Assembly (NCBI GenBank): GCA_964199315.1
Contig: OZ116708.1
Span: forward strand, 2,976,001 to 3,040,000
DNA from: Orbicella franksi
Lineage: Eukaryota
Direction of reading: 5' to 3'
DNA: 64,000 nt
The translations under genes were made by a program, and so were the position numbers. Below the pieces are notes generated by a model. It made no database searches. It saw nothing but the letters and a program-made list of their open reading frames with translations, and was not told the origin of the DNA. Positions 26,288 through 64,000 of this stretch are shown piece by piece (the first letter of the stretch is position 1; each line of letters begins with the position of its first letter).

Positions 26288-26422
26288 NNNNNNNNNNNNN
26301 NNNNNNNNNNNNNNNNNNNNNNNNNNNNNNNNNNNNNNNNNNNNNNNNNNNNNNNNNNNNNNNNNNNNNNNNNNNNNNNNNNNNNNNNNNNNNNNNNNNN
26401 NNNNNNNNNNNNNNNNNNNNNN
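26288..26422. other. Sequence gap, 135 N
   Basis: Run of N. Confidence 0.99.
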
Positions 26423-26516: not shown

Positions 26517-26664
26517 NNNNNNNNNNNNNNNNNNNNNNNNNNNNNNNNNNNNNNNNNNNNNNNNNNNNNNNNNNNNNNNNNNNNNNNNNNNNNNNNNNNN
26601 NNNNNNNNNNNNNNNNNNNNNNNNNNNNNNNNNNNNNNNNNNNNNNNNNNNNNNNNNNNNNNNN
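26517..26664. other. Sequence gap, 148 N
   Basis: Run of N. Confidence 0.99.
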
Positions 26665-38146: not shown

Positions 38147-38228
38147 ATGAAGACACTATCCACCGCTGTATTTATAATTATTTTGATTCATCAAATTTGC
38201 GCAGCGACGGACAAGAAACCCTTGAAAG
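38147..38228 (+). CDS. ADAMTS9: ADAMTS exon 1, signal peptide
   Basis: [28 protein letters not shown]|gtaagt. Confidence 0.85.
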
Positions 38229-44200: not shown

Positions 44201-47200
44201 TGCTGACAGGCTTAAAAACTACAAATCTTGAATAACAACGAAACATTCAAGCCTGAAAACACTTTCCCTGCACGTTTGCCGGTGTTCCAAAATTCAATAT
44301 GGCGGCCAGAGGCGGGAAAGAGTGGGTGGTATTCTCACAAACCGGCGACAGTGCGGTGGCGCTGAAAATGACTTGGTAAAAAAAACTAGCCATGGAACAA
44401 TTAAAATCGTTGCTAAAAAAAAATTTCCGCCAAGGAGCTTTCCTGTTTTCTTAGCTGCTAAACTATGTGCATCATCACTACCCAAATTGCCGGGTATTGC
44501 CGAATACTATTGACCAGGTCTTCACTTATCTTTCTTTAAACGTCATCATCGCAGTCGTACCCTATTTACACGTTAAGCGTGGGAAGAGATTCAATTCTAG
44601 AGCAATAAGAGCACAAGATTTATCTAGGCATCCCAGGCAAATTAGGGGGTTTCTTTGACTGATAAGAAGAGGGGTAGGTGCAAGCAAAGTCGCAACGGAA
44701 CCCAAACAATGATTGGATTTAGTTAATTTTGTTCGCCTATGTATCAAACCGGCGACTAATTCTTTATTTCCGAAACACGTAGCGAGGAATAGCTTTGCTA
44801 TTTCCCCTTGATTTGAAGTATTTTTAATCCATCTCAGCTAACTCTTACGCCCCCTTCCTTCCCCTTCGTTCCCTCTTGCCTTTCCCACCATTCCCTCTTC
44901 GCCCCTCTATCCCTCCTATTGGTACCCATTTCTATTTCGTAGGGGTGGGGAAAGGCACTGTGAGGTAAAGCGAGCACATGAGACCAACGGTCAGCGGACT
45001 TCTTCATCCCGCGTCACTAGGTCACAACGCATGCGCCTCCCTTTATCTGTTGTCATGATAATGTTTGTACTCGTCATAACAGGGCATGATGTGTTTTTGT
45101 TAATTTCAGCCCGATATCCGTATTTCGACAGACGCGACGAGTACTCTGAAAAGTTTCTGTCGCTGGCAGAAAAAAGTAATGGCAAAAGACCAGAGTCACC
45201 CAGAACACCATGACACAGCCATCTTACTAACAAGGTAAGCTTTGTCTTTATTTTCTGTGAAGCGAGTGTGTTTAGTTAGCAAAAAGTGAACAAAGCGTGA
45301 ATCACTATGCCCATAAGTAGTGTGATAAGACAGATGAAAATCAAGCTAAAACGTGCAGTCGGCAGAAAGCGCGGGAAGCTCACAGGGTTTAAAGGAGCTC
45401 AGTCATGGTATTTTGAGCTATTAAGGAATTTAAGTAACCACGACGGCGACGCCGAAGACAACGTCGATTAAAAAATGACTTTACACTTTACCTACGAATC
45501 TCGCAATACTCTAAAGTCATTTACTTTGTTTGTCACCGACAAAACTTTCACGAAACTGAATCTGGTTCACAGCGATAAACTTGAAATAAAATTTAAAAAA
45601 TTAGCCGTCGTGGTCCACGTTCTCCAGACAACGCAGAATTTGGTCATTTCACGTTGTTGTTGTGCAGAGGACGGTAAAGAAATGTACCAAGAATTATAAC
45701 GCACGTGCATAGCCATTGTTCGGCTCATTAAATCTTTTGTTTAGCGACGTTCCCGTTGCCGTTGCTGTCGTGGTTTTCTTAAACTCCCTAATTTGGCCAC
45801 CACGTACGAAGTTACCTTTAAATTGAGGGAAACCCGAAAATAACAGTTTACTCAGATAGAAAAACACTTAAAAGTTCATAATAAACCATAAAATAACAAG
45901 GACGGTTAAGGATGGAGAAGATTGACGCGGATTACAAACGACGAATTTGAAAAATTTAGGCTAAACTTTTCAAGATGCGCAAACCGTGTCGTAGCTCCAT
46001 TAAATCATGATTGGTTTTCATCAGTAGAGCACGCGCCATGCTTCTGTCACTTTACTACGTTTAGTAATCTAAGTGAAGGTGTCTTATTCCCCGTTCTTAG
46101 TCGAAAGTGTAGCAGCTCTCATAAGCTTGTAATTCTATTTGTCGTCATAGTGTATAGCTGTTGTTGTTTTGGGGCTAGGTGCATTGTTTCTGTTGCTTGT
46201 TTTATTGTTCTCTCAAAGGGAATCGAGCCATTCATGTGAGACCTTATGAGAGCTGCTAAAGACCCTTATTAATCGTCTACCCTTTCAATTCTTTGTCGTT
46301 CTCATTTCAGGACGAATATATGTCGATCAGTTGGAAAATGTGGCACATTAGGTAAATAATCCAGTCCATAGCTTCTCTGTCATACTTTTTAAGACTATCT
46401 TCGATTTATCCCCCACGCACAAGCTACGAAACGAGATGTCAATTCACTTATTTCGAGACGAAAAAAGTGCTTCAAAATCAGAGGAAACCGTACCCTAAAC
46501 ATACAGCCCAGTAATGTAGAGAAACAAGCAGAGGTAATACCAAACCTGTTGGTTAGATAAAGGAGATTCAGACGGTTTTATGAAAGACTAAGTCTGAAAA
46601 AATGGGCCTAAGTTTTTCAACATGCTGACGTTCTTAATGAAGATGTGCTCTGAATGAAAAAATTCAAGCTTCTGGTTCGCGAAATCGTAAAGCCGCGAGA
46701 AGAAAAAGCCAATGTCCACCGGGTTGGCAGAGTTGAACAAAACACTAACAATAAAACGCGGGAAAACTATTGCTAAAGAGAGTACTGACGCGCATATGCT
46801 TCCACCAGTCATTTCCCCCTCAAACCTGTTGTTCGTTTTCTTCTCTGAGCTTTTGTGTCTCTGCTTCTTGTCAGGTCTTGCCGAACTTGGAACAATGTGT
46901 CATCCATCAAGGAGCTGTGCTTTGGCCGAGGACAATGGACTGAGCACAGCTTACACGATAGCGCATGAACTGGGACATGTGTAAGTATTTGATAATTTTC
47001 TGAATGAGGAAGAAAAGGAACCCGAACCTGAAGAATTCTAGCAAGCAGACATGATATTACGGAAGACATTTGGCCCCATAAGAGCAACCAGAAACTGTGT
47101 GATGCCTTGTATGACCTGTAGAGTACACCAGCCCTTCCGCTTCAATTCCTCCTACTCAGCGTTTTCCTCCTCTCCATCTTCCACCCGCCCCTTCTCTTCT

Positions 47201-50200: not shown

Positions 50201-53200
50201 AAGCATCGAGCAATTCTGTTAAGCAACGAGCGCATTGGAAGATTTTACAGTCTGAGGTTCTCTCCTTGGAGTACTTTTGTGTCAATAGCTCTCGAATCGT
50301 CGTTACAATTGGGTCACGGAGGTCGATAATGCGACGCAAATAAGGGTTAATTTTTGCTGTGTTTACAATTCCAATCACTCAATCCCAATTTGTTTACATT
50401 CTCGAAATCCCTGGAGAAGTGTGGTCGCCAGATATCTGTCACCTTGCGATTGTTTTTCCACCTTGACTAACAGGATCAGCGGGTATAACATGACGTGACA
50501 CAAAATCCATGTGACGTAAAGAATTGAAACAATTTTTCGAGTTCTTAACTTTGGGTCCTTATTTGGAACGACGGCGAAAGTTGTGTACAGTTACCTGTGA
50601 TGTGCGAATACTGCTATCCAGACGAACATTTTATGAGTAAATACCACGACTGTAAAATCAAGAAGTGCTGATTTTTTTAAAAGAAGAACTTCCTCAGTGC
50701 ATAGAAAACAGGGACAAAAATTCCACTTGTAAGCTTGGATTAAAACTCGTTAACGATAAGGATGAGGTCTCAGCTTTGCTTAAATTGTTCACCGTGGGAT
50801 CATGTTTGATTATGAAATAACACCGTTGCACTCAATCGCGCACATTCCAATGCCATGCTGCAACGAGATTGCAGAACAGTTGCAAGATAATGGCACGTTT
50901 CGTGAAGATTTTTCTACGTTTACTGCAATTCTCGTCTCTTTTTAGATGCGCAACAAGTTTCGCGTCTTACTTCCATTCTTGCAATATTAAAAACCTTGAG
51001 CAGGTGTTGCGTGACGAATAGAAGGCATGACTCGTGAGAGTTACTCAGTACTCTAGCAATAGAGATTGAAAGAAATTTGACATTTGTGTTTATTTTCAAA
51101 TCATAGTGGTGCATCAGGGGCCAATGTGTAAAGAAACGAAGACTGAAGCCTGTTGACGGCAACTGGGGGCCCTGGGGCCCGTACAATGCATGCACCAGGA
51201 AATGCGGTGGAGGTATTACATTCTCATACAGGAAATGCAACAATCCAATGTAAGTACCTTCATCACGCACTTCTTGTCACGCAATCCGATGTTCGTTCGG
51301 CAGGTCACCGAATATTTTCACTGCAAAAAAGGAAGATTGCGGGTTCACCTGAGTAAAAGTCAAATCAGTAAAACAAAATGGTATTTTGCTTTTAGTGGCG
51401 AAAGTACCTCCGATAATATTTTACACCACGGCAATGTAAAATGAAATTCATGCTTTCGCGAAGTCAAGTTAAAGCAGCTTCGTCACGGGTTATGCATCTT
51501 GACAAGTTAAGCCTAGAGTTGTTAAGTTCATCGTTTGTAATCCGTGTTAATCTTCTCCGTCCTCAACCATTCTTGGTCCTTTATTGTTTATTGTTATCTC
51601 TTTGGTTTTTTTTTTTTTTATCTTAGTAAACTATTATTTTCAGTTTTCCGTCAATTTAAAGGTAATTTTGTGCTTGCCTAAAACAGCTCAAAATACCGTG
51701 ACTGAGCTTCTTTAAATAGCCCCTCAGTAATTCCTGTATCACAAATGGTGGAAGACAATTTTTACTTGATTATTGGCCTTTGTTATCCTATTTACGCAGA
51801 CCAGAAAATGGAGGAAAATATTGTGTCGGTGAACGAAAACGATTCAAGTCCTGTAACAGTCAGGTAACAATAACCACTTAACGAGTAGCTTGCCACGTTG
51901 TGTTACCTTAACACTTCCATTCTTGAAACTTTTGTCACGCAATATTATAACTTCTAGTCATTGTGTTATAATTAATTTACCAGGAATGCCCCAAGGGTTC
52001 AGCAGATTTCCGGGCTTTACAGTGTGTTAATACGCATCCTCGAACCATAAGCTCTGGTTCTAAGAGCTACAGAGCGACCCAATGGTTGCCGAAATATGCT
52101 GGAGGTACGAAAGTCATTTAACAGTAATGAAATGTCTCTTTGATGCATTGTACAAAAGTATACTTGTAAATTTCGTTTTATCAAAGGAACCATAATGCAA
52201 GGCTTGTAGCCTACGAAAGGCACATCTTTAATCTAATCAGCGGATGCTTGCTTTGTCTAGTCTGCAAAGCCTCAGTTTTCATCAGAACTCCAAGGCGACC
52301 TTTTGGGATTTTGGGCTTTTTCAAGGCAGTTAAAGAATCAAGGAGGACTTATAGTTCAGACTCTACCGTTGATCATGACCTTGGTGTTGGTTTTTGAGCA
52401 TTTTATGGCTATTTATACCAGCGATTTGCTAACCGCCAGTTTGTGTTATTGTTGATGTACAGTTAGAAAAGAAAACCAGTGTAAACTCTACTGTCGCATG
52501 GCCGGGACTGCCATCTATTTCAAGTTAAGGGACAAGGTTATTGACGGGACTCCGTGTAACCAGGAGACTACAGACATCTGTGTGGACGGCAAATGTTTGG
52601 TAAGAGTCCAGTTTAACGGAGATGAAACACTCTGACACTCCTACCTGGCTTATCATCGGCGTAAAATCGAGAACGTTAAATCTGCTCACTAGAGGATCCA
52701 AGTGTACTTTGGTAGATTTGGTAAAACTATGCTACGAAGAATTTTAACACACCTTTTGAAGAAGTTTGCAGAATGTAACTTTTTTCAACTATATTTACTT
52801 TCTTTTTTAGAGGGGGGAGCGACAATTAGTCGTTGGGCGCAATAGAAATGCAATTATTATTTTATATTATATCAAAATATGCGTGAACACCCGGTTGTTT
52901 TTGTTTTTAGCCCGCTGGTTGTGACAGAGTCCTCAACTCAAAGAAGAAGGTTGATAAGTGTGGAGTATGCGACGGAGACAATTCATCCTGTAGGAGATTT
53001 ACCGGAACATTCAACGAGACAAGGTTTGGTAAGGTTTGCAAGCATGTTATCCGAATACCTAGCTTTGCGTTACGCTTTACGTTTAGAGTCTTTAGACCAC
53101 GACCAGTTCGATCCTATCTCCCTTAGTTAGTCGAGTGGGAAGCGAAACTTAAAGATCCGTGTTATACCAAGATTAAGAGGGGAAAAAACTAGCTACGCAA

Positions 53201-56200
53201 ATACTGATGGCTGGGGCTTATCTTGTCTCCAGTTATCTGCACCTTTTACTAATTTTGTTTTCGATTTTCACTCCGCAAGCTAATGTAGAAAAGAACTGCC
53301 TAATACGCTCCTGTTGTTTCAAACGGGTCATTTTAAAAGTTTCTTGCTGTTGTAAAACAAATTGCGCGTGTTACTGATTCACTTAAAATATTCTACGCGA
53401 ACTAACCCCCTTTAAGACCACTTTGTAGATCACAGAATCACGAAGAAGAGGAATCGAGTGTCTTGCCCAATAAAGTAAACTTATGACAGTGTCCTCGCTA
53501 GAAACTCCTTGATCAAATTGAATGTCGAGTGTGGAGGCGCAAACCGCAGTCAGATTTGTTTGGTGTTTTGGTGCGATGAAACAGATGACTAATTGTTTTA
53601 TTCTATGTTAACATTCACAGGGTACAACTATATATTCACAATTCCTGTCAACTCGACCGACATACTTATTACCCAGTATGGTTGGAAAAATCGCGAAGAC
53701 TCCAATTACTTAGGTTAGCATTTTTATCTGCACTTCAGTTGTTTATTTGTATAGTTTGCAAGGAGTTTGTTGACTTAAACCTACCTCATGTAAACGCTAA
53801 GCCATTTGAGAAGCCAGGTGTATAAATGGCAACCGGAGAATTTAATGCTCGGGGTAACGCTGCGATGGACTAGCATCCCATCCAGGGTGGAGTGGAGATA
53901 CCTCTAATTGCTTCATGCTACTGAAACCGGAAAAAAAGCGTCGGCGTAATGGGCCGCTTGGCTCCAACTCAGAATTTAATTAAAATACAAAATTAAAATA
54001 TTATTTATCTGGTATTGACATAGCTAAGATATCTTTCTTTTGTTTTACAATCAGCGCTTCAAAGTGACAGTGGCACTTTTCTCCTGAATGGTGGAATGAT
54101 CATCGGGATTGGAGTCAGAGAATTCAGGATGGACGGCGCTAAAGTCTGGTACTCAGGCTCGGACAAAGCTACTGAGCAAATCAAAATTGACGGGAAAATA
54201 AAGAAACCAATCAAAGTGCACGTGAGTAACCAATGCTACTTTTCTTGTTACCATAGTAACTCCGTAAAATGATAGTCATCCGATTTCCTGATACCCTCTT
54301 GCAAAGTGAATTTAGGAGAGATTAGGCACCATCTGACAGCGCTAAGTATTCTGTAACGCGCTGAGTAATTAATAACAAGATAATGCACAATTAATGTGTG
54401 CTGCAGTATTTCTTCAAAAATAAAATGAAGACGCCGTTGACTTCAGTACTAGAGAATTTTAAAGCCAGCTACTCTCGGATTTTCTAATTAGATTTCAGTT
54501 AATTTTAAGCTTTGGAGTTGTGACAAAGCGTTTGCAAAGTAACATTGATGATCAGGTTTTGCCTAATTCTGATTTGGCGCGATTTTGCGCGTGTCCTGCC
54601 TGGAGACAAGAAATCCATGCGCTCGTCAGCTTCTGTTTATGATCGTGTTGGCAACACTGAATGGCTCAATAACGGGCCGTTTGAACAGAAATGAAGAAGA
54701 CAGTATCTGTTTTTCAAGATGTCAGTATTTTCATCAATGTATATTCTACCGCAGGTCCTTGAAGTGGGAGAGGTTCGTCCCCCTAGTGTTCACTACGCCC
54801 TTAACCAAATGGTAGCAGAACCTACAAAGTTTGTCTATAAATGGGACCAGCTTGGACCATGGACTCAGTGCAGCAAGTTATGTCAAGGTACGACACAAAT
54901 TTGCACGTAACAAAATAAACCCAAATGGGGCATTTACACCAGGTTTCAAAATTTTCAGCTTTACACTAAATGAAACGACTTGCAACGTTTTTAGTCAGCG
55001 GAGTTCAGTAAAACGCCACACCAATTTTCAGCGTTGCGCAGTCTAGCATCGCTTGAATACCTTAGCTCGAAAAAATATATAAAGCCTCTCTGAATCGGCC
55101 GTGACAGAATTTTACGACAAATTGCAGCTAAAAATGATGTTACCCCCTTTTCTGTAAAGCTTTCAATTACTCCTGTTGTCTTACTTCAGGGCAAAGAAAA
55201 CGGCGACCAAGATGTGTCCGCGCTATTGACGGACAGCTCGTATCGAATTCACGCTGTGATCAGAGGACTCGGCCGAGTAGTGTGACGGAAGACTGTAACA
55301 TTAGCTGCCGCCTCAGGTTGGTAACGAAATCTATATGGTGGAGTTGTAACGTACATTAACACTTAATTGTATTGATTTCTTTTCATCATTTAAATGAAAT
55401 ATTTGACGCATTTAGTACCATTCATTGGCACATACCTTGCATTCTTGTCATGTCAGATGGCACAAGGAAGACCCGGGAAAATGTTCCGCACGTTGTGGGC
55501 CTGGGTACCAGAGTCGACCTGTACGGTGCATGCGCGTTACCAGCGACCGGTGGGACATTGTTCAAGATAAACATTGCCCAGGAGCCAAGCCTGCTGTGGT
55601 TGTTCCATGCAAGGGGACCTGTGAGGGAACCAGATGGGTGTACACTAAGTGGACACAGGTATTTTGACACACGTACCCGTGATATACCTACTTCAGTTTT
55701 ACTAATTGATAAAGATCATTAACTAATATATAACCGAAGAAATGGTTGTTTGCTTTATAATTTACAGTGTTCAAAAAGTTGTGATAAAGGAGAGCAGACT
55801 CGACAAGCCACCTGTGTGGACACCTTTGGAGAGAGCTTGATCGATCGAGACTGCCGACCAAAAGACAAGCAAACGCTGAGACGACAATGTAACAGCTTCA
55901 AGTGTCCGTGGTGGACAGAAGGAGACTGGAGCTCGGTAAGTCGAACATTCTCAAATATTCATTGTGTCTTAACTCTGTCTGTCTGTCTGTCTGTCCATCC
56001 GTCTATTTGTCTCTCTGTCTGTCTGTCTGTCTGTCGATCTCTCTATCTTTCTGCCTCTCGGTCTGTCAATCTATCTGTCCGTCCATCCGTCTATTTGTCT
56101 GTCTCAATGTAAGGCCGAAAAGGCTCTTAAAAGTGTCAAATAGTAGCTGCTTTACTAAACGTATATGAAATAAGCGAGCCACTCCATATTTGTCTGTCTG

Positions 56201-59200
56201 TCTGTCTCACTGTGTGTCTCTCTGTCTCTCTGTCTGTCTGTCTGCATGAAACAGTCAGTGTCTGTCTGGGAATTCTATGTCATACAATGCCCTTATAGTT
56301 TGATTCTAAAATATTCAGTATTTGAAAAAACGTAACACGGTGCTGGCGTCAGGGTCACTACAATGCTCTCTTGGGTAAGGCCTTTGTGTACGGCACACAA
56401 GCTGTCAGAGCGGCTACTGCTCTATGCATAATTAGTAGAATTCTACTAGTATAATACTGCAAATGCCGCAATCCGATTGGCTGAGCTACTCGTATACTAT
56501 CAGCCATTAGAATGCAGTAGCTGTCGGCCGTCAACGAAATGCGACGTTTTTATCGTTTTTCCGAAGTTTTGGAAGAAAGTTGAAATGTAAATGGACAATT
56601 GAATTCCTGAGAAGACTAAAAGAAGTACATAAACGGATTCTTGACTTTAAAAACTTGAAATTATTGAAAAACCGGTGCGCGCGCGTAAACAACAACTGCA
56701 AATTTACTAAGGACAATTCAATACGTGCGATTTTGTTAAAGTGTGAAGTTCAATAATGCGTCGACAAATACTTGGAAACCATTATTTGCGTTAATTTAAG
56801 TTAGAATTCTACTGAAACAATTAGATTATTCGCTCTCGATTTCTATGAGGCGATAGTTGATTCGGCCTTCGGCCTCATCAACTATCACCTCATAGAAATC
56901 TCGAGCTCATAATCTAATTGTTAATTAGTATTCCTTAAATATAAGAATTGTAATGCATTACTTATCTGCGTAAAAGGTTGCTAGTATACACAGGGGAAAT
57001 AATTAATACGGATGAGCGAGACATTCATTGTGTTCCTCTCCCAGTGCAGTGTGACGTGTGGCTCGGGACAGCAGACCCGTCAAGTGAAATGTACATCAGA
57101 GCAGGGAGTAGCTGTTGCACATAAAAAGTGTGACGCGAACAAAAAGCCACTCACAACAAAGTCATGTGACCTGAAGATTCCCTGTCCTTATTGGTTCGCA
57201 GGAAAATGGACAGACGTAAGTAAAGTGTCCTATATATTGTGCCTAAGATTTTGAACGAACTAGCCTGCAATGCATGTGTATTCTGGCGAGCGAGTGCATT
57301 TTGATTAAGCGAGCGCCATGTTGGATTCAAAATCCGAAGAGGGTGGGGGGAGACGAAAAGGCGTCTTAGGGAGAGGGAGCGATGCCGAAAGAAGAGTAAC
57401 GAGAGAGGGGAAGGGGAAGGAAAAATACGCCTGCCTGTAATCATTTAATTTGAGTTCATTGGGAAAACTGCACCGATAAAGCAGTTTTTCAACTGTTTTT
57501 GGTTCACCTGCTAATATCTCTTCGGCTGGATCAATCTATTGATGCAGGCTGTGACATTTACCTAATGCGCGAAGTTACGTGACATCTAGAAGTACGTCAC
57601 GCAAGTACGTACGGACCATGTAAAATCTGAGTTACTCTGTCTTTCGTCCCAGTGCTCCAAGACGTGCAGCACGGGACTCAAGACTAGGCAAGTTCTATGT
57701 CTGTCCGGGAGAGGACTGGTCGCCAGCGCCGTAGACGATGAGTTATGTTCCGCTGACACCAGACCAGTTTCCCGTAGAGAGTGCAAACTTCAAGTTTGCC
57801 CGGCGACGCTGTTCGAATTTTACGAGGAAAAGCCAAAGGAGTTTTATTGGAGAATCACAGTCTGGTCCCAAGTAAGATTCTATGCATTTGTCATTTAGTT
57901 TTTAGAACTGTTGCTGTGTCACTGACGCAGACAACAAGGCGCTCTGGTTATTTACTGCATGATCATTTTTGCGTCTTGCAGTGTTCTGTGACATGTGGAG
58001 AGAAGCCTGGAACACGGTACCGTAACGTCGAGTGCGTGAAGGTGAAGCCTGGGAAACAGGAAGTTACAGAAGAACAGGAAGTTGTTCGTGAACAATATTG
58101 CGAAAGCACTCCAAAACCTGCCGATACAGAGTTGTGCAAGGTCCTACCGTGCACGAGCTGGAAGCATGGGTCCTGGGGAAGAGTAAGTATTTAAGCCTCG
58201 GTTGATAAAAGTTTTTATACCTTGCCATAGAAAATGCAGCCAATCAGAATACAGAAGCGCCGTCGTATATTTGACGGTGTTGCACCTATCCTTTCCATCA
58301 TGCGCCGCGCGTATGTCGCATTGATTGTGTTTGCCACTGTATTTTCTATGGCATGGTATAAAAAATTATGCAATGCTCTCTCGTGGTATACCATGGAATA
58401 TCCCACTTTAGTATATACCACACAAGTGAATAGTGCTTTTCGCTCGCTCTGATTGGTTAACTCGGAGGTGATTACCAAGTACTATTCACCTCCGAGCAGC
58501 CAGCGCGAGAGATTTTAAAATTTTCGGCCGCTTGTCAAACATAAAATAACGTTTTGGTCCGCTAATTATTCAGCTTGTGTGGTATATACTAAAACAATTA
58601 TTCACCTCAGTGTCGGTGAAAGTGATAGATATTTACCTCCACTTCGATGAATAATTGTTAATTATTTCCTTGGCACACTCACTCATCTAAAGGCTCGTGG
58701 GTATACCGGAGGAAATACAAGCGACTCGTGGGATATTCCACGGTATACCACTCGAAAGAATTGTAAAACGAATATGTGTTTTGACCAGTCACTTACAACT
58801 TTTTATTTTATTGTGCCTTCCGTTACAGTGCTCTCAACGCTGTGGAGTAGGTTTTCAGCTCCGTGTGGTCAAGTGTGCCTACTCTAACTGGAAAATCACA
58901 AAAGACGAGAACTGTGACCCGAACAGCCGACCAAACAACAGAAGGTATTGTCAAATTAAACCTTGTAAGACAACGACTACAGCAAGCAACGGTAACCAAC
59001 TTCCGAGCACGACACGAGTAAGACCGACCACGACACCAGCTCCGACAACTCCCCGAGAAATACCGAGCTGGAAGGAAGGCAGTTGGAGTGAGGTAAAAAA
59101 GATTGTTTTTACCTCCTAATGGAACCAAATGTTGTAATGGTTAGGTGTATATACTATCGAAACGTAGTTGCCAAACTATTTATCGTCTTTCCTACTCATC

Positions 59201-62200
59201 TTCTTGCAAGGACGGATCCAGAATTTTTCAAGGGGGGGCTGGTACCTTGGGGTTGCAGAATCAATGGGGCGTGTTCCCAAAATGTTGCAATTTGAGAGTT
59301 GAAACTTAACTGAAAACCGTTTCACTAGAAATACTACCAATGTCACAAAGTAGAACTTACAATGAGGTACCTGTCTAGAGAGTTTGCCTTAATTTCTGTC
59401 ATGATATTGATGTTTTGGTTCTCCAAAAGGGTGATGGCTAGCCACCCAGTCCACATCCCCTCCCCCCTCCCCCTCCCCCCTTGAATATGCCCCTGACTTA
59501 CAACTAAGATATCAATCCACTCAATGCAAAGTACACTTCGGGAGCAAAACTCCCTTTCTGTGACTAATTTATTTTAGTTTATTCCTTTAAGTGCTCTGTT
59601 ACATGTGGCCTGGGTGAGAGGTATCGACAAGTACATTGCAGATTAAGTAACGGACAGAACAGTAGTGACTGCGATGTAAACAAGAGACCGTTGACCGTTA
59701 TGGCGTGCATTTTAAGAGATTGTCCTGTGTGGCATGAGGATTTCTGGAGTGAAGTAAGTTTCACGGACTGAGTTTTCGTCTGTCATCATTAAGGCACATG
59801 ATATCTTTACAGTAAGCTACCACTGGAGTCATTTAGAGTGTTGTCAAATGACGTCAAGGCAGCCATATTGGTGTCCGAAAACATCGAAACGGCGACCATG
59901 TTGGTGTGGCAAAACAATGCTGGTAGTTAAATTCTTTTCTTATGTAAACCCTTTCTTTTGTTCCAATAAATTTGCATGGCTACTGGTCACGTGAGTGAAA
60001 ACACTCTATTACCTGAAGCTGAAAATGTCCAAAAAATCAATGATTAATAGCCTCAGAAACGAAACGAGGCTCAGAGGAAATCACAGACAAATTGTATAGC
60101 AAGGTACCATGTGAAGTTATTGCTGATTAGCTGTATTCTCTTGGTTCTAGTGCTCAGTCTCTTGCGGAGAAGGTCAAAGGCGGAGAAGTGTCGACTGCCG
60201 ATTCGCAAATGGCCAGTCGAGTCCCGGATGTGACGAGAAACTCAAACCTGCAACTAGAGAAGCTTGTAACATCAGACCTTGTCCGTATTGGATGAAAGGA
60301 GACTGGGGCAAAGTATGTCGTCAATTTTAAACTCTTTCCTATGCAGGTTTAAATCGTTTAGAACCAAACACTAATGATATATGACGGACTGTTTTTTACA
60401 GTGTTCAGTGACTTGTGGCTCAGGAATTAAGATTCGTTCAGTGGAGTGCAGCGATAAAGATATAAGCTGTGACGCAGGAACGAAACCACCAACTTCAGAA
60501 CGATGTGAACTTAAAGAGTGTCCACGATGGATAACGAGCCCTTGGGAGGAGGTAAATGAGTTTACATGAAGAATAGACCAATTTCGGTATATTAAAATTC
60601 AGCCTAAAACAATAGACCTCAGTACGAGGCTCTGGGGAATAAACCCCACAAACTCTGTAGTTATTCCCCAGAGCCTCGCACTGAGGTCTATTGTTTTAGG
60701 CTGAGTTTTGATATATCGAAATTGGTCTATTTGGTGACTCAGACAATGCCGAATGGCTCCGACCGATTCCGAAAGTTGTCAAAGATTTTCCCGATGGTAA
60801 CTCGACGTCTGCGAGCATTTATAAACATTTTCGAAGGTTTTTCGAAGTCCCCTGATGAGTGCCAAAGATATTACGCAAAATGTCCCATAATCTAAATGAA
60901 AGCAATTGAAACCCGCCTTGTAGGAAACAAATAAACCACAAAACGTTTAGTTTTTAACTTTATTTAAATAGAAGTAAGCCTTAAAGTAATAGTTTTCTGT
61001 GGTTGAAACAAGAAACAAAAACTATAAACAAATCAGGAGCAAATAGGCTACGATTGAGACGGAATAAGAACAACAAACTTGACATCTCATCGCCAATTAA
61101 CATTTTGAACTTCATACACGCTTTTACACTATGAATTTTCATTTGCTGTCTGTAGTGCTCAGTTTCCTGTGGCGACGGTCAAAGACAGCGGACCGTTGAT
61201 TGCAAATCTACAGACGGGAAGTCAAGTCCCGGATGTGACGAGGGAAATAAACCTGCAAGTAAAGAGGACTGTAACATCAGACCGTGTCCTTATTGGATAA
61301 AGGGAGACTGGGGCAAAGTAAGAAGTACTCCAAAAAAAGTCAAATTTTAATTGTTTGTTTCGCATTTTAGTTCCTCTTTCTCTGGCCAAATGGCGAAATT
61401 ACAGTCCCATGAACTATGTCCATTCCATTTCATGAAATTAAGTTCCCGCGAAAATAAGTAACAATAAGGTACTTATAGTATTTTAATGATGGTTGTTTAT
61501 AGTGCTCCGTGACTTGTGGTTCAGGAATTAAAATTCGCTCAGTGGAATGCAGTGATAAGGACATAAGCTGTGACGCGTGGGCAAAACCTCCGACTACACG
61601 ACGATGTGATCTTGAAGCATGTCCAGAGTGGATAGCAAACCCATGGGAAGAGGTTAGCAATAACTTATATTCGATAGCCTGGTTGGATACATTTTAGAGA
61701 GAATTAAGTTAAGAGACTTCGTTTAAACAAAAACCATATAAACAAATTGGCTCCGATTGAGACGGAATAAGTCTTTTATTTACTTAGGGCTGGTACAGGA
61801 AATTACTCCTTAGCTCAAACATCAAGTGCCAAGATCATTGACCGGCATCTGAAGTTTATCTTATACCCTCCTCTTTGCAAAACTAATCTTATTGGTTAGT
61901 TACACCATGCTATAGTAAACACCCAAGATGGCTGGCTAAAACAGTTTTTATAGCTTCGCGCGTCTACATTTGACCGGCAAATGCAGTGGTAGCTTCCACA
62001 AATACTAAAATGCCTTCATTCAATGGTTTCAAGACACCCATGCACAGTTTGTGTGTGTTAATAATTTTTTTGTCATTCTCTGACCATATACCACACGCGT
62101 TATACATCGGGCATGTTACCTGTCTTTAGCAAGAATTTACCTCATGCTTAATCTTTTTTGTTTGTGCTACAATCAAACATTTAAATGCTTTTTATTCATA

Positions 62201-63825
62201 GTGCTCGGTCTCTTGTGGCAAAGGCCAAAGACAGCGGAGTGTTAGTTGTAAGTCTGAAAATGGACAGGCAAGTTTCGGATGTGATGAAAAAATCAAACCA
62301 CCTGTTAAAGAGGACTGTAACATCAGACCATGTCCGTATTGGATGACAGGAGACTGGGGCAAAGTAAGTAGTCGATTCTAACGCCTTTCTGTCAGTAAGT
62401 CACAAAAATTAGGGGAATTATAAACAAAAGTCCAACAGTATCTTAACAGTAACAGTGAACAAAGTTAAGCGAAAATGCCTTGACAAGTTGGACTAGGTTT
62501 ACTCGTACCTTATGTAGTCAGACTCAGTATCAGTTTTGACTATCCGCTTTATAGACGTGTCGTTTCGTTGAGGGAGAGGGATATGGGCCCAACGGACTCG
62601 CAAGTGCTAAAAAAAAATCCATTTCAAGGTTACGGGCTTAGTCCCGCGCGGCCAAAATTAACCATCACGCACTCAACTTGCATAGACGTAGCTCAGCTTG
62701 CGTTGACTTGGTGTGGGTGGCCAAACGGTGAAAGACGTCGACTTGCGTTCAAAATTTGTCTTCACCAAAGTGAGCGCAAGTCATCTCAAGCAGACCTAAG
62801 TTTTCAACTTGCGAGTCCGTTTGACAAGGGCGTTTGTTACACGCTTTTGAGAGGTCACCGTTTACTGAGATGTATGTGAGAAGGTGTTTGGCTTTAAGTA
62901 AGTGTTAAAACCAGAAAAGATAGTTTTACAATGTTCCACACTTATGTGGCCGCTTGTGTTATCTGGTATTGTCTTTCAAGGACGCTTTTGTGTAGCTGAT
63001 TGTCTTTTCTTTTCTTTTCTTTCACAGTGTTCAGTAACTTGTGGCTCAGGAATTAAAACTCGTTCACTGGAATGCAGCGATAAAGATATAAGCTGTGACG
63101 CAAGGACGAAACCGCCGACTACGGAACGATGTGAACTTAAAGAGTGTCCTGAGTGGAAAACAAGCCTGTGGGGAGAGGTAAGTCCGTTTACATGAGGTAT
63201 TTTACGACAATGCCGAACACAACAGAATCGAATGGCTCCGACCGATTCCGAACATTTCCCTGACGGTAACGTCTGCGAGCATATAAGAGTGGCCCTTCAT
63301 GGCGTATTTCCTAGTTTATGTGACAACCCATTCAAGTTAAACTATGTTTGCAATGAAGTTCTTTATTTGTAATTAGTTTGCTTGTGAAGTAATCAAATTT
63401 TGAATTGTGCGTCCTTCTCTTTAGTGCTCAGTCTCCTGCGGCGCAGGCACAAGGCAGCGGGCTGTTGATTGCAGATTCACTGATGGCCGGTCAGGTCCCG
63501 GATGTGACGAGAAAGTCAGGCCAACTGCTAAAGAGGCCTGTAACATCCGACCGTGTCCTTATTGGATAACGGGAGACTGGAGCAAAGTGAGTGGTCAAGT
63601 TTAAACCATTTTCTGCATGTAACTGCAAACTATGAGCGCTAATGATAACTTCTTTCCGTTTTTTTCCATATGTAGTGCTCTGTTACTTGCGGCTCAGGAG
63701 TTAAGAATCGATTAGTGGAATGTAGTGATGAAGATTTCAGCTGTGACGCCAGAACAAAGCCGCTGGCCACACAACGCTGTGAACTTGAAACGTGTCCGCA
63801 GTGGACAACAGGTGCTTGGGGGAAG
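38147..63825 (+). CDS. ADAMTS9: ADAMTS9/20/GON-1-like secreted metalloprotease, 3'-partial; 35 exons, 5286 nt, 1762 codons without a stop
   Basis: Signal peptide, prodomain with PSTCG, furin site RRRRKR, catalytic HELGHVFSLPHD plus Met-turn HLMAP, disintegrin-like domain, central TSP1, Cys-rich, spacer, then 16 more complete TSP1 repeats. All 34 introns are GT-AG and phase-compatible. Confidence 0.9.
38333..38694 (+). CDS. ADAMTS9: ADAMTS exon 2, prodomain
   Basis: ttcag|..[48 protein letters not shown]|gtaagt. Confidence 0.92.
39531..39690 (+). CDS. ADAMTS9: ADAMTS exon 3, prodomain
   Basis: tttcag|[23 protein letters not shown]|gtaagt. Confidence 0.92.
41449..41594 (+). mobile_element. 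5' half of the same SINE family (ADAMTS intron 3)
   Basis: GGTGGCCTCACGGTTAGTGCGCTCGACTCCGGATCGAG..GTGTTCTTGGGCAAG..CCAGGTGTATAAATGGG. Confidence 0.8.
42326..42519 (+). CDS. ADAMTS9: ADAMTS exon 4, furin site and start of catalytic domain
   Basis: tttag|..[34 protein letters not shown]|gtaagt. Confidence 0.92.
44044..44127 (+). CDS. ADAMTS9: ADAMTS exon 5, catalytic
   Basis: taaag|[28 protein letters not shown]|gtatgg. Confidence 0.92.
45110..45234 (+). CDS. ADAMTS9: ADAMTS exon 6, catalytic
   Basis: ttcag|[41 protein letters not shown](R)|gtaagc. Confidence 0.93.
45389..46003. mobile_element. TTAA-flanked (Kolobok-like) MITE, interrupted by a second MITE
   Basis: TTAA-AGGAGCT ... AGCTCCA-TTAA; uninterrupted relative at 48609-48850. 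Confidence 0.7.
45421..45792. mobile_element. Harbinger-like MITE nested in the Kolobok-like element
   Basis: TIRs TTAAGGAATTTAAGTAACCACGACGGCGAC / GTTGCTGTCGTGGTTTTCTTAAACTCCCTAA; TWA-like flanks. Confidence 0.75.
46311..46351 (+). CDS. ADAMTS9: ADAMTS exon 7, catalytic (41 nt)
   Basis: tttcag|[13 protein letters not shown](G)|gtaaat. Confidence 0.9.
46875..46980 (+). CDS. ADAMTS9: ADAMTS exon 8, zinc-binding motif part 1
   Basis: gtcag|[35 protein letters not shown](V)|gtaagt. Confidence 0.95.
47150..47300. repeat. Pyrimidine-rich low-complexity tract and (ATC)n microsatellite upstream of exon 9
   Basis: Direct reading. Confidence 0.85.
47357..47500 (+). CDS. ADAMTS9: ADAMTS exon 9, zinc motif part 2 and Met-turn
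   Basis: tcgtag|[40 protein letters not shown]|gtaagt. Confidence 0.93.
47538..47750. repeat. Degenerate (GCGGGAT)n cluster in ADAMTS intron 9
   Basis: Multiple GGGATGC/GCGGGAT units. Confidence 0.7.
47981..48125 (+). CDS. ADAMTS9: ADAMTS exon 10, catalytic end and disintegrin-like start
   Basis: cccag|[37 protein letters not shown]|gtaagt. Confidence 0.93.
48480..48584 (+). CDS. ADAMTS9: ADAMTS exon 11, disintegrin-like
   Basis: gtaag|[35 protein letters not shown]|gtgagt. Confidence 0.92.
48609..48850. mobile_element. TTAA-flanked (Kolobok-like) MITE, uninterrupted copy
   Basis: TTAA-AGGAGCT ... AGCTCTT-TTAA; shares GGTTAAGGATGGAGAAGATTGAC and AACTTTTCAAGATG with the 45.4-46.0 kb copy. 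Confidence 0.75.
51107..51249 (+). CDS. ADAMTS9: ADAMTS exon 12, central TSP1
   Basis: catag|[40 protein letters not shown]|gtaagt. Confidence 0.93.
51800..51863 (+). CDS. ADAMTS9: ADAMTS exon 13, central TSP1 end
   Basis: acgcag|[21 protein letters not shown]|gtaaca. Confidence 0.93.
51984..52104 (+). CDS. ADAMTS9: ADAMTS exon 14, Cys-rich domain
   Basis: accag|[22 protein letters not shown]|gtacga. Confidence 0.92.
52463..52599 (+). CDS. ADAMTS9: ADAMTS exon 15, Cys-rich domain
   Basis: tacag|[34 protein letters not shown]|gtaaga. Confidence 0.93.
52911..53028 (+). CDS. ADAMTS9: ADAMTS exon 16, Cys-rich end
   Basis: tttag|[39 protein letters not shown](G)|gtaagg. Confidence 0.92.
53621..53713 (+). 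CDS. ADAMTS9: ADAMTS exon 17, spacer
   Basis: cacag|[30 protein letters not shown]|gttagc. Confidence 0.9.
   Translation, partial: GTTIYSQFLSTRPTYLLPSMVGKIAKTPIT
53814..53975 (+). mobile_element. 3' half of the same SINE family (ADAMTS intron 17)
   Basis: CCAGGTGTATAAATGG..GCGATGGACTAGCATCCCATCCAGGG..GCTTCATGCTACTGAAACCGG. Confidence 0.8.
54055..54221 (+). CDS. ADAMTS9: ADAMTS exon 18, spacer
   Basis: atcag|[39 protein letters not shown]|gtgagt. Confidence 0.9.
54755..54887 (+). CDS. ADAMTS9: ADAMTS exon 19, spacer end and TSP1-2 start
   Basis: cgcag|[31 protein letters not shown](G)|gtacga. Confidence 0.92.
55190..55316 (+). CDS. ADAMTS9: ADAMTS exon 20, TSP1-2
   Basis: ttcag|[36 protein letters not shown](R)|gttggt. 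Confidence 0.9.
55457..55658 (+). CDS. ADAMTS9: ADAMTS exon 21, TSP1-3
   Basis: gtcag|[33 protein letters not shown]|gtattt. Confidence 0.92.
55768..55935 (+). CDS. ADAMTS9: ADAMTS exon 22, TSP1
   Basis: tacag|[32 protein letters not shown]|gtaagt. Confidence 0.93.
55970..56250. repeat. (TCTG)n-type microsatellite tracts in ADAMTS intron 22
   Basis: Direct reading; explains the spurious LSVCLSV ORFs. Confidence 0.9.
56432..56927 (+). mobile_element. Hairpin-ended non-autonomous element (~500 bp)
   Basis: Starts TTAGTAGAATTCTACTA, contains CGATTGGCTGAG, repeats TTAGAATTCTACT just before a 107-bp hairpin (56816-56922), ends TTGTTAATTA. Confidence 0.75.
57045..57215 (+). CDS. ADAMTS9: ADAMTS exon 23, TSP1
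   Basis: cccag|[28 protein letters not shown]|gtaagt. Confidence 0.93.
57261..57440. mobile_element. Truncated MITE related to the TAGCCTGC-ended family
   Basis: CTAGCCTGCAATGCA start and AAAATACGCCTGC motif. Confidence 0.45.
57653..57871 (+). CDS. ADAMTS9: ADAMTS exon 24, TSP1
   Basis: cccag|[34 protein letters not shown]|gtaaga. Confidence 0.9.
57982..58182 (+). CDS. ADAMTS9: ADAMTS exon 25, TSP1
   Basis: tgcag|[34 protein letters not shown]|gtaagt. Confidence 0.92.
58213..58770. mobile_element. Two nested hairpin-type elements (inner 58408-58664)
   Basis: Outer arms GTGGTATACCATGGAATATCCCAC (58383) / GTGGGATATTCCACGGTATACCAC (58728); inner TTAGTATATACCACACAAG ... CTTGTGTGGTATATACTAA plus terminal hairpin ending TTGTTAATTA. 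Confidence 0.7.
58829..59092 (+). CDS. ADAMTS9: ADAMTS exon 26, TSP1 + Thr/Pro linker
   Basis: tacag|[37 protein letters not shown]|gtaaaa. Confidence 0.92.
59207..59495. mobile_element. Degenerate hAT-like MITE
   Basis: Ends CAAGGACGGATCC ... AATATGCCCCTG resemble CAGGGGCGGATCC-type TIRs; no intact TSD. Confidence 0.45.
59592..59753 (+). CDS. ADAMTS9: ADAMTS exon 27, TSP1
   Basis: ttaag|[32 protein letters not shown]|gtaagt. Confidence 0.92.
59833..60010. mobile_element. MITE with internal GCCAT(A/G)TTGGTGT direct repeat
   Basis: TAGAGTGTTGTCAAATGACGTCA ... CACGTGAGTGAAAACACTCTA imperfect TIRs. Confidence 0.65.
60151..60312 (+). CDS. ADAMTS9: ADAMTS exon 28, TSP1 type A copy 1
   Basis: tctag|[54 protein letters not shown]|gtatgt. 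Confidence 0.92.
60402..60551 (+). CDS. ADAMTS9: ADAMTS exon 29, TSP1 type B copy 1
   Basis: tacag|[50 protein letters not shown]|gtaaat. Confidence 0.92.
60572..60731. mobile_element. 160-bp near-perfect palindromic MITE in ADAMTS intron 29
   Basis: AATAGACCAATTTCGGTATATTAAAATTCAGCCTAAAACAATAGACCTCAGTACGAGGCTCTGGGGAATAA / TTATTCCCCAGAGCCTCGCACTGAGGTCTATTGTTTTAGGCTGAGTTTTGATATATCGAAATTGGTCTATT. Confidence 0.85.
61156..61317 (+). CDS. ADAMTS9: ADAMTS exon 30, TSP1 type A copy 2
   Basis: tgtag|[54 protein letters not shown]|gtaaga. Confidence 0.92.
61503..61652 (+). CDS. ADAMTS9: ADAMTS exon 31, TSP1 type B copy 2
   Basis: tatag|[50 protein letters not shown]|gttagc. Confidence 0.92.
62202..62363 (+). 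CDS. ADAMTS9: ADAMTS exon 32, TSP1 type A copy 3
   Basis: catag|[54 protein letters not shown]|gtaagt. Confidence 0.92.
62630..62832. mobile_element. Degenerate Harbinger-like MITE remnant in ADAMTS intron 32
   Basis: GGCCAAACGG, ACTTGCG repeats and a terminal GAGTCCGTTTGACAAGGGC. Confidence 0.45.
63028..63177 (+). CDS. ADAMTS9: ADAMTS exon 33, TSP1 type B copy 3
   Basis: cacag|[50 protein letters not shown]|gtaagt. Confidence 0.92.
63425..63586 (+). CDS. ADAMTS9: ADAMTS exon 34, TSP1 type A copy 4
   Basis: tttag|[54 protein letters not shown]|gtgagt. Confidence 0.92.
63676..63825 (+). CDS. ADAMTS9: ADAMTS exon 35, TSP1 type B copy 4 (gene continues past the window)
   Basis: tgtag|[50 protein letters not shown]|gtaaaa. 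Confidence 0.92.
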
Positions 63826-64000
63826 GTAAAACGATTTTTGATAAGATAGCTAAGTTCTATTTGCTTTGCTGGTCGTTTAACATCTGGATAATATCTGTTT
63901 ACTCCAAAACAAATGTTTGTTCGAAGATGCGGTTCTTAGTTGTTTGGCAAGTAAACATTAGCATATGTCACATCCGCACTCACGTGCAGATCACGTGTTG

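Follow-up and report, generated by a model that had tools for sequence, protein, structure and literature searches.

Two types of TSR exon alternate strictly, four times over, in the tail of an ADAMTS gene of the coral Orbicella franksi, which raises the question of whether this array is a young acquisition of the species' own lineage, as a first-pass annotation of the DNA had proposed, or an older feature shared with other corals. We analysed the window, i.e., the whole stretch of 64,000 nucleotides (positions 2,976,001 to 3,040,000 of contig OZ116708.1), along with the remainder of the gene beyond its end and orthologues from other animals. The best explanation as a whole, in which we place high confidence, is that of an old, conserved A-B array in the stony-coral ADAMTS9/GON-1 gene, and not of a recent expansion.

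Four copies of a two-exon unit

Between positions 60151 and 63825, eight exons on the forward strand alternate strictly between a type A of 162 nt and a type B of 150 nt, with four copies of each: A1 (60151-60312), B1 (60402-60551), A2 (61156-61317), B2 (61503-61652), A3 (62202-62363), B3 (63028-63177), A4 (63425-63586) and B4 (63676-63825), the gene's final exon within the window. All eight are preceded by AG and followed by GT, start on the codon of a first cysteine (TGC or TGT) and end on a whole codon, and are therefore in phase 0-0; each lies where the first-pass annotation had placed it, with the order, lengths and phase given there. A1 covers the body of a TSR and, in addition, the W-strand of the one that follows, and both A1 and B1 exceed the Pfam threshold for PF19030, TSP1_ADAMTS (35.8 and 35.1 vs 23.8 bits). 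A repeat finder independently delineated two four-copy families, limited to the exons and ∼20-30 nt of flanking DNA. Protein identity reaches 65-74% among A exons and 62-84% among B exons, versus 38-48% (about 42%) between A and B and 35-54% between the A/B exons and three earlier TSR exons, so that copies of one type are indeed far more alike than the earlier exons, as had been claimed. In DNA the copies differ by 14-27%, B1 being the closest paralogue of B3 (86% nucleotide identity), and the net charge within the window ranges from +1 to +4 for A exons and from -1 to -3 for B exons, a trend found elsewhere too and weak in Porites. The array consists of a genomic unit, one A exon of 162 nt and one B exon of 150 nt, that occurs four times in tandem midway along the TSR tail.

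Coral metatranscriptome contigs contain joints at the exact exon borders from T03, the 162-nt TSR exon directly before the array (59592-59753, forward strand), to A1 (59753 to 60151), from A1 to B1 (60312 to 60402), and for B1-A2, A2-B2, B2-A3, B3-A4 and A4-B4. Seven of the eight consecutive splice joints are thus represented, the A3-B3 joint not being among those listed for these contigs. The array exons are expressed and, at these seven joints, appear constitutively spliced. Only consecutive joints and no exon skipping were seen in two sets of RNA contigs, which drop rare forms, and two raw-read RNA runs gave coverage on intronic repeats only, with none on exons. In orthologues, RefSeq isoforms vary by the presence of exactly one TSR exon, which in two Montipora species is the first B exon. 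Since every exon is in phase 0-0, skipping any single one preserves the reading frame, as the first reading of the sequence had pointed out, and leaves the TSR periodicity intact as well.

The host gene and its TSR tail

The gene spans from position 38147 to ∼27.4 kb beyond the end of the window. On sequence grounds we assign it as the ADAMTS9/ADAMTS20/GON-1 orthologue of a robust-clade stony coral, based on best-hit colinearity and shared architecture; in tblastn searches it is colinear with ADAMTS9 of Nematostella (XP_048588500) and its Oculina counterpart (XP_078343627). It opens on the forward strand with a signal-peptide exon (38147-38233; a methionine, then a hydrophobic stretch) and an M12B propeptide exon (38323-38742; PF01562, 51.4 bits), followed by a catalytic-domain exon (46862-46981, forward strand), identified by motif and Pfam, that ends in the zinc-site motif HELGH, the remainder of which falls in the next exon. 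The single-exon Pfam matches to reprolysin are weak, as expected because the exon encodes only 40 amino acids, and the catalytic region is 75-91% identical to and colinear with that of Oculina. Next come a central TSR exon (51107-51250), 94% identical to Oculina residues 517-564, a cysteine-rich exon (52911-53120) with a weak ADAMTS_CR_3 match, and an ADAMTS spacer exon (54054-54224, forward strand; PF05986, 31.6 bits). After the spacer there are 37 matches to TSR units, from 55186 to the extended coordinate 86813; the gene has ∼38 TSRs. They include T03 as well as three TSR exons that lie further upstream and are more divergent (57045-57215, 57647-57871 and 57982-58182, forward strand). A unit of 53-54 amino acids occupies the position of T03 in every coral examined and in Nematostella, and a vertebrate ADAMTS9 shows one of 54 amino acids at the corresponding ordinal position (a match by length alone); the A type may derive from T03.

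Downstream of the window, 21 further TSR exons precede a C-terminal GON domain, detected by PF08685 on two exons (L007:4435-4602 and L007:5994-6110; 42.4 and 23.9 bits) and lying in a region where six exons are colinear with the GON domain as found in Nematostella and Porites. With propeptide, reprolysin, spacer and TSP1_ADAMTS matches in window exons and the GON domain beyond, the initial description of the array as an ADAMTS tail was borne out, as was its guess that the array may run on past the window's end. All 28 TSR exons listed start on a codon boundary and have a length divisible by 3, and 27 of them begin with the POFUT2 consensus CXX(S/T)CXXG (PMC5043182). The tail is laid out as one TSR-sized phase-0 exon per repeat, each exon beginning at the CSxxCG of a TSR and extending to the W....W.. 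strand of the one that follows, with the Pfam TSP1_ADAMTS profile beginning at position 9 in each exon. Such a layout is found throughout the gene, and in Oculina and Nematostella as well; it is ancient, as 27 Nematostella units coincide with AG..GT exons, and it means that unequal crossing-over in introns can add or remove whole repeats in frame.

Mammalian ADAMTS9 and ADAMTS20 and C. elegans GON-1 share with the coral gene the M12B protease, the disintegrin-like, central TSR, cysteine-rich and spacer domains, a long TSR array and GON, and most of their TSRs likewise carry the O-fucosylation consensus CXX(S/T)CXXG (PMC5043182). However, no A/B super-repeat was seen in them, and ADAMTS9 has 15 TSRs (PMC5043182) against the ∼38 of the coral gene, in which the extra units form, by comparison of unit lengths, a mid-array block after the eighth unit. 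The ADAMTS9-like proteins of sea stars (Asterias amurensis XP_071810505, Acanthaster, Patiria) belong to the same family, possess GON and have independently enlarged their tail to 25-28 TSR units, but by a run of twelve 55-aa units, all of one type and placed early in the array, with no alternation of two types.

Distribution, age and competing explanations

The ADAMTS9-like protein of Oculina patagonica (XP_078343627, isoforms X1-X4) has the same domain order, ∼80% identity over the N-terminal non-TSR part, and the same four pairs of 162/150-nt exons with AG/GT borders at the same splice sites. Orthologues from Desmophyllum (KAJ7351111), Pocillopora (XP_058944069), Montipora (XP_068714559), Acropora (XP_074610395) and Porites (CAH3189279) have colinear domains and 65-72% identity over this part, and all stony-coral orthologues compared end in a GON domain. 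The 54/50-aa alternation occurs in all six of these other corals, in 4 to 5 or more copies: Oculina and Desmophyllum have four modules, Pocillopora four plus an extra B, the Acroporidae (Acropora and Montipora) five, and Porites at least five. It is thus present in both major stony-coral clades, being read from protein unit lengths in the complex clade, with exon borders checked in the window, Oculina and Nematostella. Across the seven coral genomes all 31 A units measure 54 amino acids and all 31 B units 50, and the type-specific motifs are kept without exception (NGQxSPGC and CNIRPCPxW in 31 of 31 A units, ECSDKDxSCD in 31 of 31 B units); in both clades the final B unit contains LETCPQW or a sequence close to it. 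The modules of the two clades do not pair one-to-one, and in Porites evermanni neighbouring modules are identical. A downstream family of 150-nt exons has five copies in the window versus three in Oculina.

Outside the stony corals, Nematostella vectensis ADAMTS9 (XP_048588487 / XP_048588500) resembles the coral gene in its propeptide, reprolysin, spacer, ∼32 TSRs and GON, and in having one phase-0 exon per TSR unit at the same offset from the domain boundary. Yet identity is only ∼50%, a single 53-aa unit is followed by units of 48-52 amino acids (a 53/48 pair, then 50-aa units), and neither the A-B alternation nor an A or B signature motif is present. A profile search with the A-type alignment over 1.84 billion representatives retrieved neither signature outside stony corals. 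Six extra short profile matches (P0029, P0060, P0067, P0086, P0093 and P0113) stem from coral contigs, as fragments of read-through ORFs; matches from the octocorals Xenia (P0176) and Dendronephthya (P0171) and the ENA cluster P0001 are not orthologues and belong to a different TSR-rich gene without GON that has 50/51-aa arrays of its own. Whether distant cnidarians share the same array, on which the first-pass annotation had made its view depend, therefore receives a divided answer: they do within Scleractinia, and Nematostella does not. As the one non-scleractinian hexacoral orthologue compared, Nematostella brackets the origin of the A-B pair only loosely.

Between copies, dS amounts to 0.5-1.6 and dN to 0.06-0.23, and the dN/dS of roughly 0.1-0.3 indicates purifying selection on them. 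The introns between copies cannot be aligned, except those after B1 and B3: the start of the former (60552-60845, forward strand) carries an inverted-repeat insertion at 60572-60731, without which ∼110 nt align with the intron after B3 (63178-63290), a residual homology implying that genomic DNA and not cDNA was duplicated. In a tree of the modules, those of the window pair with their Oculina counterparts for module 2 (96/89), module 3 (98/76), the pair with which the third module of Desmophyllum groups, and module 4 (97/94); the first module of the window has its best identity with Oculina module 1 (85%). AU tests rejected a single clade of the four window modules (p-AU 0.026) and a clade of the terminal modules of all species (p-AU 0.016), these values being modest and one of the tested groups having been defined after the sequences were viewed. 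The module alignment has 104 columns only, leaving deep branches poorly resolved, and the grouping of all robust-coral modules was supported at no more than 80/13; a nucleotide tree built from the window's own set of 28 TSR exons is too short to resolve and has no starred branch. B1 and B3 resemble one another more than would be predicted from their positions, and any gene conversion among copies could bias dS values as well as the tree. The four copies of the window were already present in the common ancestor with Oculina, and they probably also predate the split from Desmophyllum.

The array would be older still if a single amplification had preceded the split of the two stony-coral clades, with gene conversion within each lineage keeping the copies similar and erasing deep one-to-one orthology. 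We take this as a serious possibility, though an unlikely one. None of the stony corals examined has fewer than four modules, and these always occupy the corresponding part of the array; the ending of the last B unit is common to both clades, and the unusually high identity of B1 and B3, with the homology of their intron flanks, is consistent with a conversion tract. Yet the terminal modules of all species do not form one clade in the AU test, copy numbers differ between the clades (4 vs 5 or more), and the window-Oculina pairs recovered for modules 2-4 imply that conversion was not strong over that span.

It seems rather improbable that the alternation itself has been functionally selected, the net basic A and net acidic B TSRs forming a paired super-repeat that would serve, for example, in self-association or in binding a periodic matrix ligand. 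The strict lengths and type-specific motifs, invariant over 31 units per type in seven corals, would fit such a role, as would the opposite charges in the window and the low dN/dS; but Pocillopora tolerates two neighbouring B units, Montipora isoforms omit one B exon, the charge trend is weak in Porites, and the duplication of a two-exon segment yields alternation automatically.

An expansion that is recent and specific to the species' lineage, hence likely copy-number polymorphic today, is very improbable and largely refuted. The much greater likeness of same-type copies than of the gene's other TSR exons, the exact conservation of lengths and the identical neighbouring modules of Porites evermanni, which show that modules can be gained recently in this gene, do point towards it. 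Neither the recency nor the lineage specificity claimed at first can be upheld, however, given the dS between copies, introns that are mostly unalignable, the positionally matched modules of Oculina (four in number, modules 2-4 forming pairs in the tree), the rejection of a window-only clade, and the occurrence of the alternation in six other corals from both major clades. An assembly artefact, be it a collapsed or an over-expanded repeat, is implausible in spite of the proneness of tandem repeats to misassembly and of the A3-B3 joint missing from RNA contigs: the copies are too divergent in DNA to be confused, RNA contigs join A1-B1-A2-B2-A3 and B3-A4-B4 in order, six runs not labelled as RNA, under three organism labels, contain 92-98% of the sampled words, and the independent Oculina assembly has the same structure and count. 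We conclude that the array arose by ordinary tandem duplication of a unit of two exons and that it is old and subject to purifying selection.

Proposed mechanism and meaning for the gene

Titin and nebulin contain multi-exon super-repeat arrays that arose by tandem segmental duplication. There, as in the coral gene, block duplication of more than one domain-sized, phase-symmetric exon leads to a higher-order periodicity; families and folds are different, however, and the coral unit comprises only two TSR exons, repeated four times. For the old array favoured here, we propose that unequal crossing-over in introns would add and remove whole TSR exons in frame, and that the A-B pair would have been amplified in this way. 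Since the common ancestor with Oculina, purifying selection has held each copy at exactly 54 or 50 residues. Amplification probably occurred separately in the two major coral clades, unless early gene conversion erased the pairing. The modules may lengthen an O-fucosylated TSR rod between the protease/spacer and the GON domain; this rod may mediate binding to matrix and cell surface, and its length may be adjusted when a single exon is now and then skipped in frame. The role suggested for the extra TSRs is drawn entirely, by analogy, from mammalian ADAMTS9 and nematode GON-1. More doubtful again than selection on the alternation as such is a fuller proposal: the A-B pair would have arisen in stony corals and been retained for its function as a super-repeat of two TSRs, basic 54-aa units alternating with acidic 50-aa ones, and how far ADAMTS9 reaches in the extracellular matrix of corals, or the periodicity of its binding there, would depend on module number (4 to 5 or more) together with occasional single-exon skipping.

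Our literature searches brought up catalogues of the TSR and ADAMTS proteins of cnidarians (PMC5446238) and returned no description of the A-B array. The locus by itself opens no new biological question; it offers a clean, datable case of a domain amplified exon by exon, in a gene whose architecture is usually regarded as fixed. The matrix protease ADAMTS9/GON-1 shows deep conservation, and both worms and mammals require it for morphogenesis, secretion and ciliogenesis. In hexacorals its TSR tail has come to hold over twice as many repeats (∼38 vs 15), and stony corals have added to it a conserved alternating module of two types. In genome annotation, the locus accounts for coral gene models and isoforms differing between assemblies by exact steps of 48-54 residues. 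Should the super-repeat reading be true, the array would show that one lineage has re-engineered a developmental protease that is otherwise deeply conserved.

Exon structure of the gene and its alternating array

A scan for the CSxxCG TSR motif directly after AG, reading 59800-64000, delimits four A exons of 162 nt (A1, 60151-60312; A2, 61156-61317; A3, 62202-62363; A4, 63425-63586) alternating with four B exons of 150 nt (B1, 60402-60551; B2, 61503-61652; B3, 63028-63177; B4, 63676-63825), all on the forward strand. Upstream of each of the eight lie a polypyrimidine tract and an AG, and a GT follows; likewise in 8/8 the first codon encodes Cys and the last codon is whole, and all are therefore phase 0-0. 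A repeat finder independently returned two direct-repeat families of four copies each, whose homology ends ~20-30 nt beyond the exon borders. Identity among A copies is 75-78% for DNA and 65-74% for protein, among B copies 73-86% and 62-84%; between A and B it is 38-48% at the protein level, and between the A/B exons and the three preceding TSR exons 35-54%. The first-pass annotation had positioned these exons exactly and described them correctly in every checkable detail.

Its guess that the array goes on beyond the window was borne out by 21 further TSR exons and the GON exons in the 30 kb that follow. In window numbering carried on past 64000, 19 TSR exons continue unbroken from 64327 to ~73720, followed by a 12.6-kb intron, two TSR exons at 86361 and 86670, and six exons (86918-91401) aligning to the GON domain of Nematostella and Porites proteins. 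Another family of 150-nt TSR exons in the same gene, with five similar copies (at most 86% nucleotide identity), lies just past the window at 66547-68573; Oculina has three units at this position, and the number of copies in this sub-array has thus altered since the two lineages diverged.

The first coding exon falls at 38147 according to colinear tblastn alignments with two orthologues, Nematostella ADAMTS9 (XP_048588500) and Oculina patagonica ADAMTS9-like (XP_078343627). Searching the window's own exons and the fetched downstream exons with Pfam identified an M12B propeptide (38323-38742), weak reprolysin matches in a 40-aa exon ending in HELGH (46862-46981) and an ADAMTS spacer (54054-54224), all on the forward strand, as well as TSP1_ADAMTS on A1 and B1 and GON on two exons downstream of the window. 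An HMM built from the units counts 37 TSRs after the spacer (~38 with the central TSR), versus 15 in mammalian ADAMTS9 (PMC5043182). The gene fits the ADAMTS9/20/GON-1 subfamily on every criterion checked, an assignment made on shared architecture and best-hit colinearity, and orthologues with the same array are named ADAMTS9-like or ADAMTS20-like in public databases. The closest is that of Oculina (~80% identity over the N-terminal part), followed by Desmophyllum (72%), Pocillopora and Montipora (67-68%), Acropora (65%) and Nematostella (50%). This order assigns the window to a stony coral of the robust clade. The window also holds two runs of N (26288-26422, 135 bases; 26517-26664, 148 bases).

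One TSR per exon, splicing and isoforms

The Pfam TSP1_ADAMTS profile begins at position 9 of each TSR exon, which contains the CSxxCG...CP body of one TSR and the W....W.. strand of the next; losing one exon costs exactly one TSR equivalent, and the TSR formed at the new joint is a hybrid, though complete. In-frame skipping, proposed earlier for the A-B exons, is possible for every one of them but is not special to them: since the phase-0, one-unit-per-exon layout recurs in 14/14 Oculina units checked (162/150 alternation included) and in 27 units of the Nematostella gene, skippability is old and gene-wide. RefSeq isoforms of the orthologues, which are model proteins, differ by exactly one TSR unit with borders coinciding with exons: Oculina X2 and X3 each lack a different 50-aa unit, Pocillopora X2 one unit and one Acropora X2 a 48-aa unit, while in two Montipora species it is the array's first B unit that X2 lacks.

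Contigs from two coral metatranscriptome sets confirm the predicted borders exactly, joining the 162-nt TSR exon directly before A1 (59592-59753) to A1 (59753->60151), A1 to B1 (60312->60402), B1 to A2 (60551->61156), A2 to B2 (61317->61503), B2 to A3 (61652->62202), B3 to A4 (63177->63425) and A4 to B4 (63586->63676). A3->B3 is the sole array joint missing from those listed, and no skipping joints are listed in the two sets, such contigs dropping rare forms. Two raw-read polyA runs from a near relative gave no reads on the exons, and 92-98% of the sampled words were present in six non-RNA-labelled runs (three organism labels). In the RNA contigs, two intronic stretches behave like elements present in many copies: 59862-60015 (depth near 1850) and ~62590-62820 (internal deletion joints 62605->62800 and 62658->62808).

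Age and distribution of the A-B modules

The expansion had been called recent and lineage-specific, a reading that the evidence does not support. The alternation of 54-aa and 50-aa units is found at the same array position in 6/6 other stony-coral orthologues: four A-B modules in Oculina and Desmophyllum, four and one extra B in Pocillopora, five in Montipora and Acropora, and five in Porites, where the preceding unit is also duplicated and one more B-like unit leads. The number of modules clearly varies from one coral family to another. A units are exactly 54 aa in 31/31 and B units exactly 50 aa in 31/31, with conserved motifs specific to each type. In the Nematostella gene, a 53-aa unit precedes units of 48-52 aa, and neither the A nor the B signature motif was found. 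By the unit-splitting pattern, a canonical-length ADAMTS9-like protein of the octocoral Dendronephthya and the proteins of Hydra, vertebrates and nematodes have 10-16 units. Sea-star ADAMTS9-like proteins carry their own, independent enlargement, in which twelve TSR units of 55 aa follow one another close to the array start.

Same-type copies differ by dS 0.5-1.6 and dN 0.06-0.23; silent sites are near saturation and the protein is under purifying selection. Between modules the introns cannot be aligned, with one exception: those following B1 (60552-60845) and B3 (63178-63290) share ~110 nt at 65% identity with indels (score 74 versus a shuffled maximum of 27), seen after removing an inverted-repeat insertion; no other intron pair of the array showed residual homology. 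Genomic DNA, introns included, was therefore duplicated, and B1 and B3 point to a shared later duplication or a conversion tract. The insertion, in the B1-A2 intron, is a perfect-looking hairpin (60572-60731; 71-nt arms, 94% complementary, 18-nt gap), very deeply covered in raw reads and contigs with reads extending into unrelated sequence, and thus a dispersed, transcribed MITE-like repeat; it arrived after the two introns had diverged.

When A+B modules are placed in a tree, three of the window's pair with their Oculina counterparts, namely module 2 (96/89), module 3 (98/76) and module 4 (97/94); Desmophyllum module 3 groups with the module-3 pair, and Montipora and Acropora pair one-to-one in 4/5 modules; window module 1 is most identical to Oculina module 1 (85%). 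A single clade of the four window modules costs 46.6 log-likelihood units (p-AU 0.026). The dS values, the non-aligning introns, the Oculina pairs and this test all contradict a recent origin: the A-B expansion is old. No one-to-one pairing across the split of the two major coral clades was found in the tree, which points either to separate amplification in each clade or to erasure of the pairing by early gene conversion; robust-clade modules group weakly (80/13), and a constraint that unites every terminal module in a single clade is rejected (p 0.016).

Over residues 621-828 and 879-1378, Porites evermanni CAH3189279 has identical or nearly identical adjoining A-B modules and a five-TSR block repeated almost exactly, representing either very recent duplication or a haplotype/assembly artefact of the record. 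Octocoral (Xenia, Dendronephthya) and unnamed ENA proteins represent a different ADAMTS-like gene with 35-50 TSRs and no GON domain; its nine nearly identical 50-aa units in a run in Xenia look like a truly recent expansion.

Growth of the TSR tail

The tail gains and loses whole phase-0 exons, and the A-B unit was copied as a genomic segment of two exons and roughly 1 kb, presumably by unequal crossing-over between introns; selection keeps every copy. The extra TSRs would lengthen the glycosylated rod that separates protease and spacer from the GON domain, and may give ligands of the matrix or cell surface more area to bind; the POFUT2 consensus CXX(S/T)CXXG (PMC5043182) stands at the start of 27/28 TSR exons. 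The A exons of the window are basic (net charge +1 to +4) and the B exons acidic (-1 to -3), a trend repeated in most other corals, and from this contrast the A-B pair could work as a unit. Literature searches found no paper describing the A-B array. It represents an ordinary process, phase-symmetric exons duplicated in tandem, within a gene family already known, and is old rather than recent.
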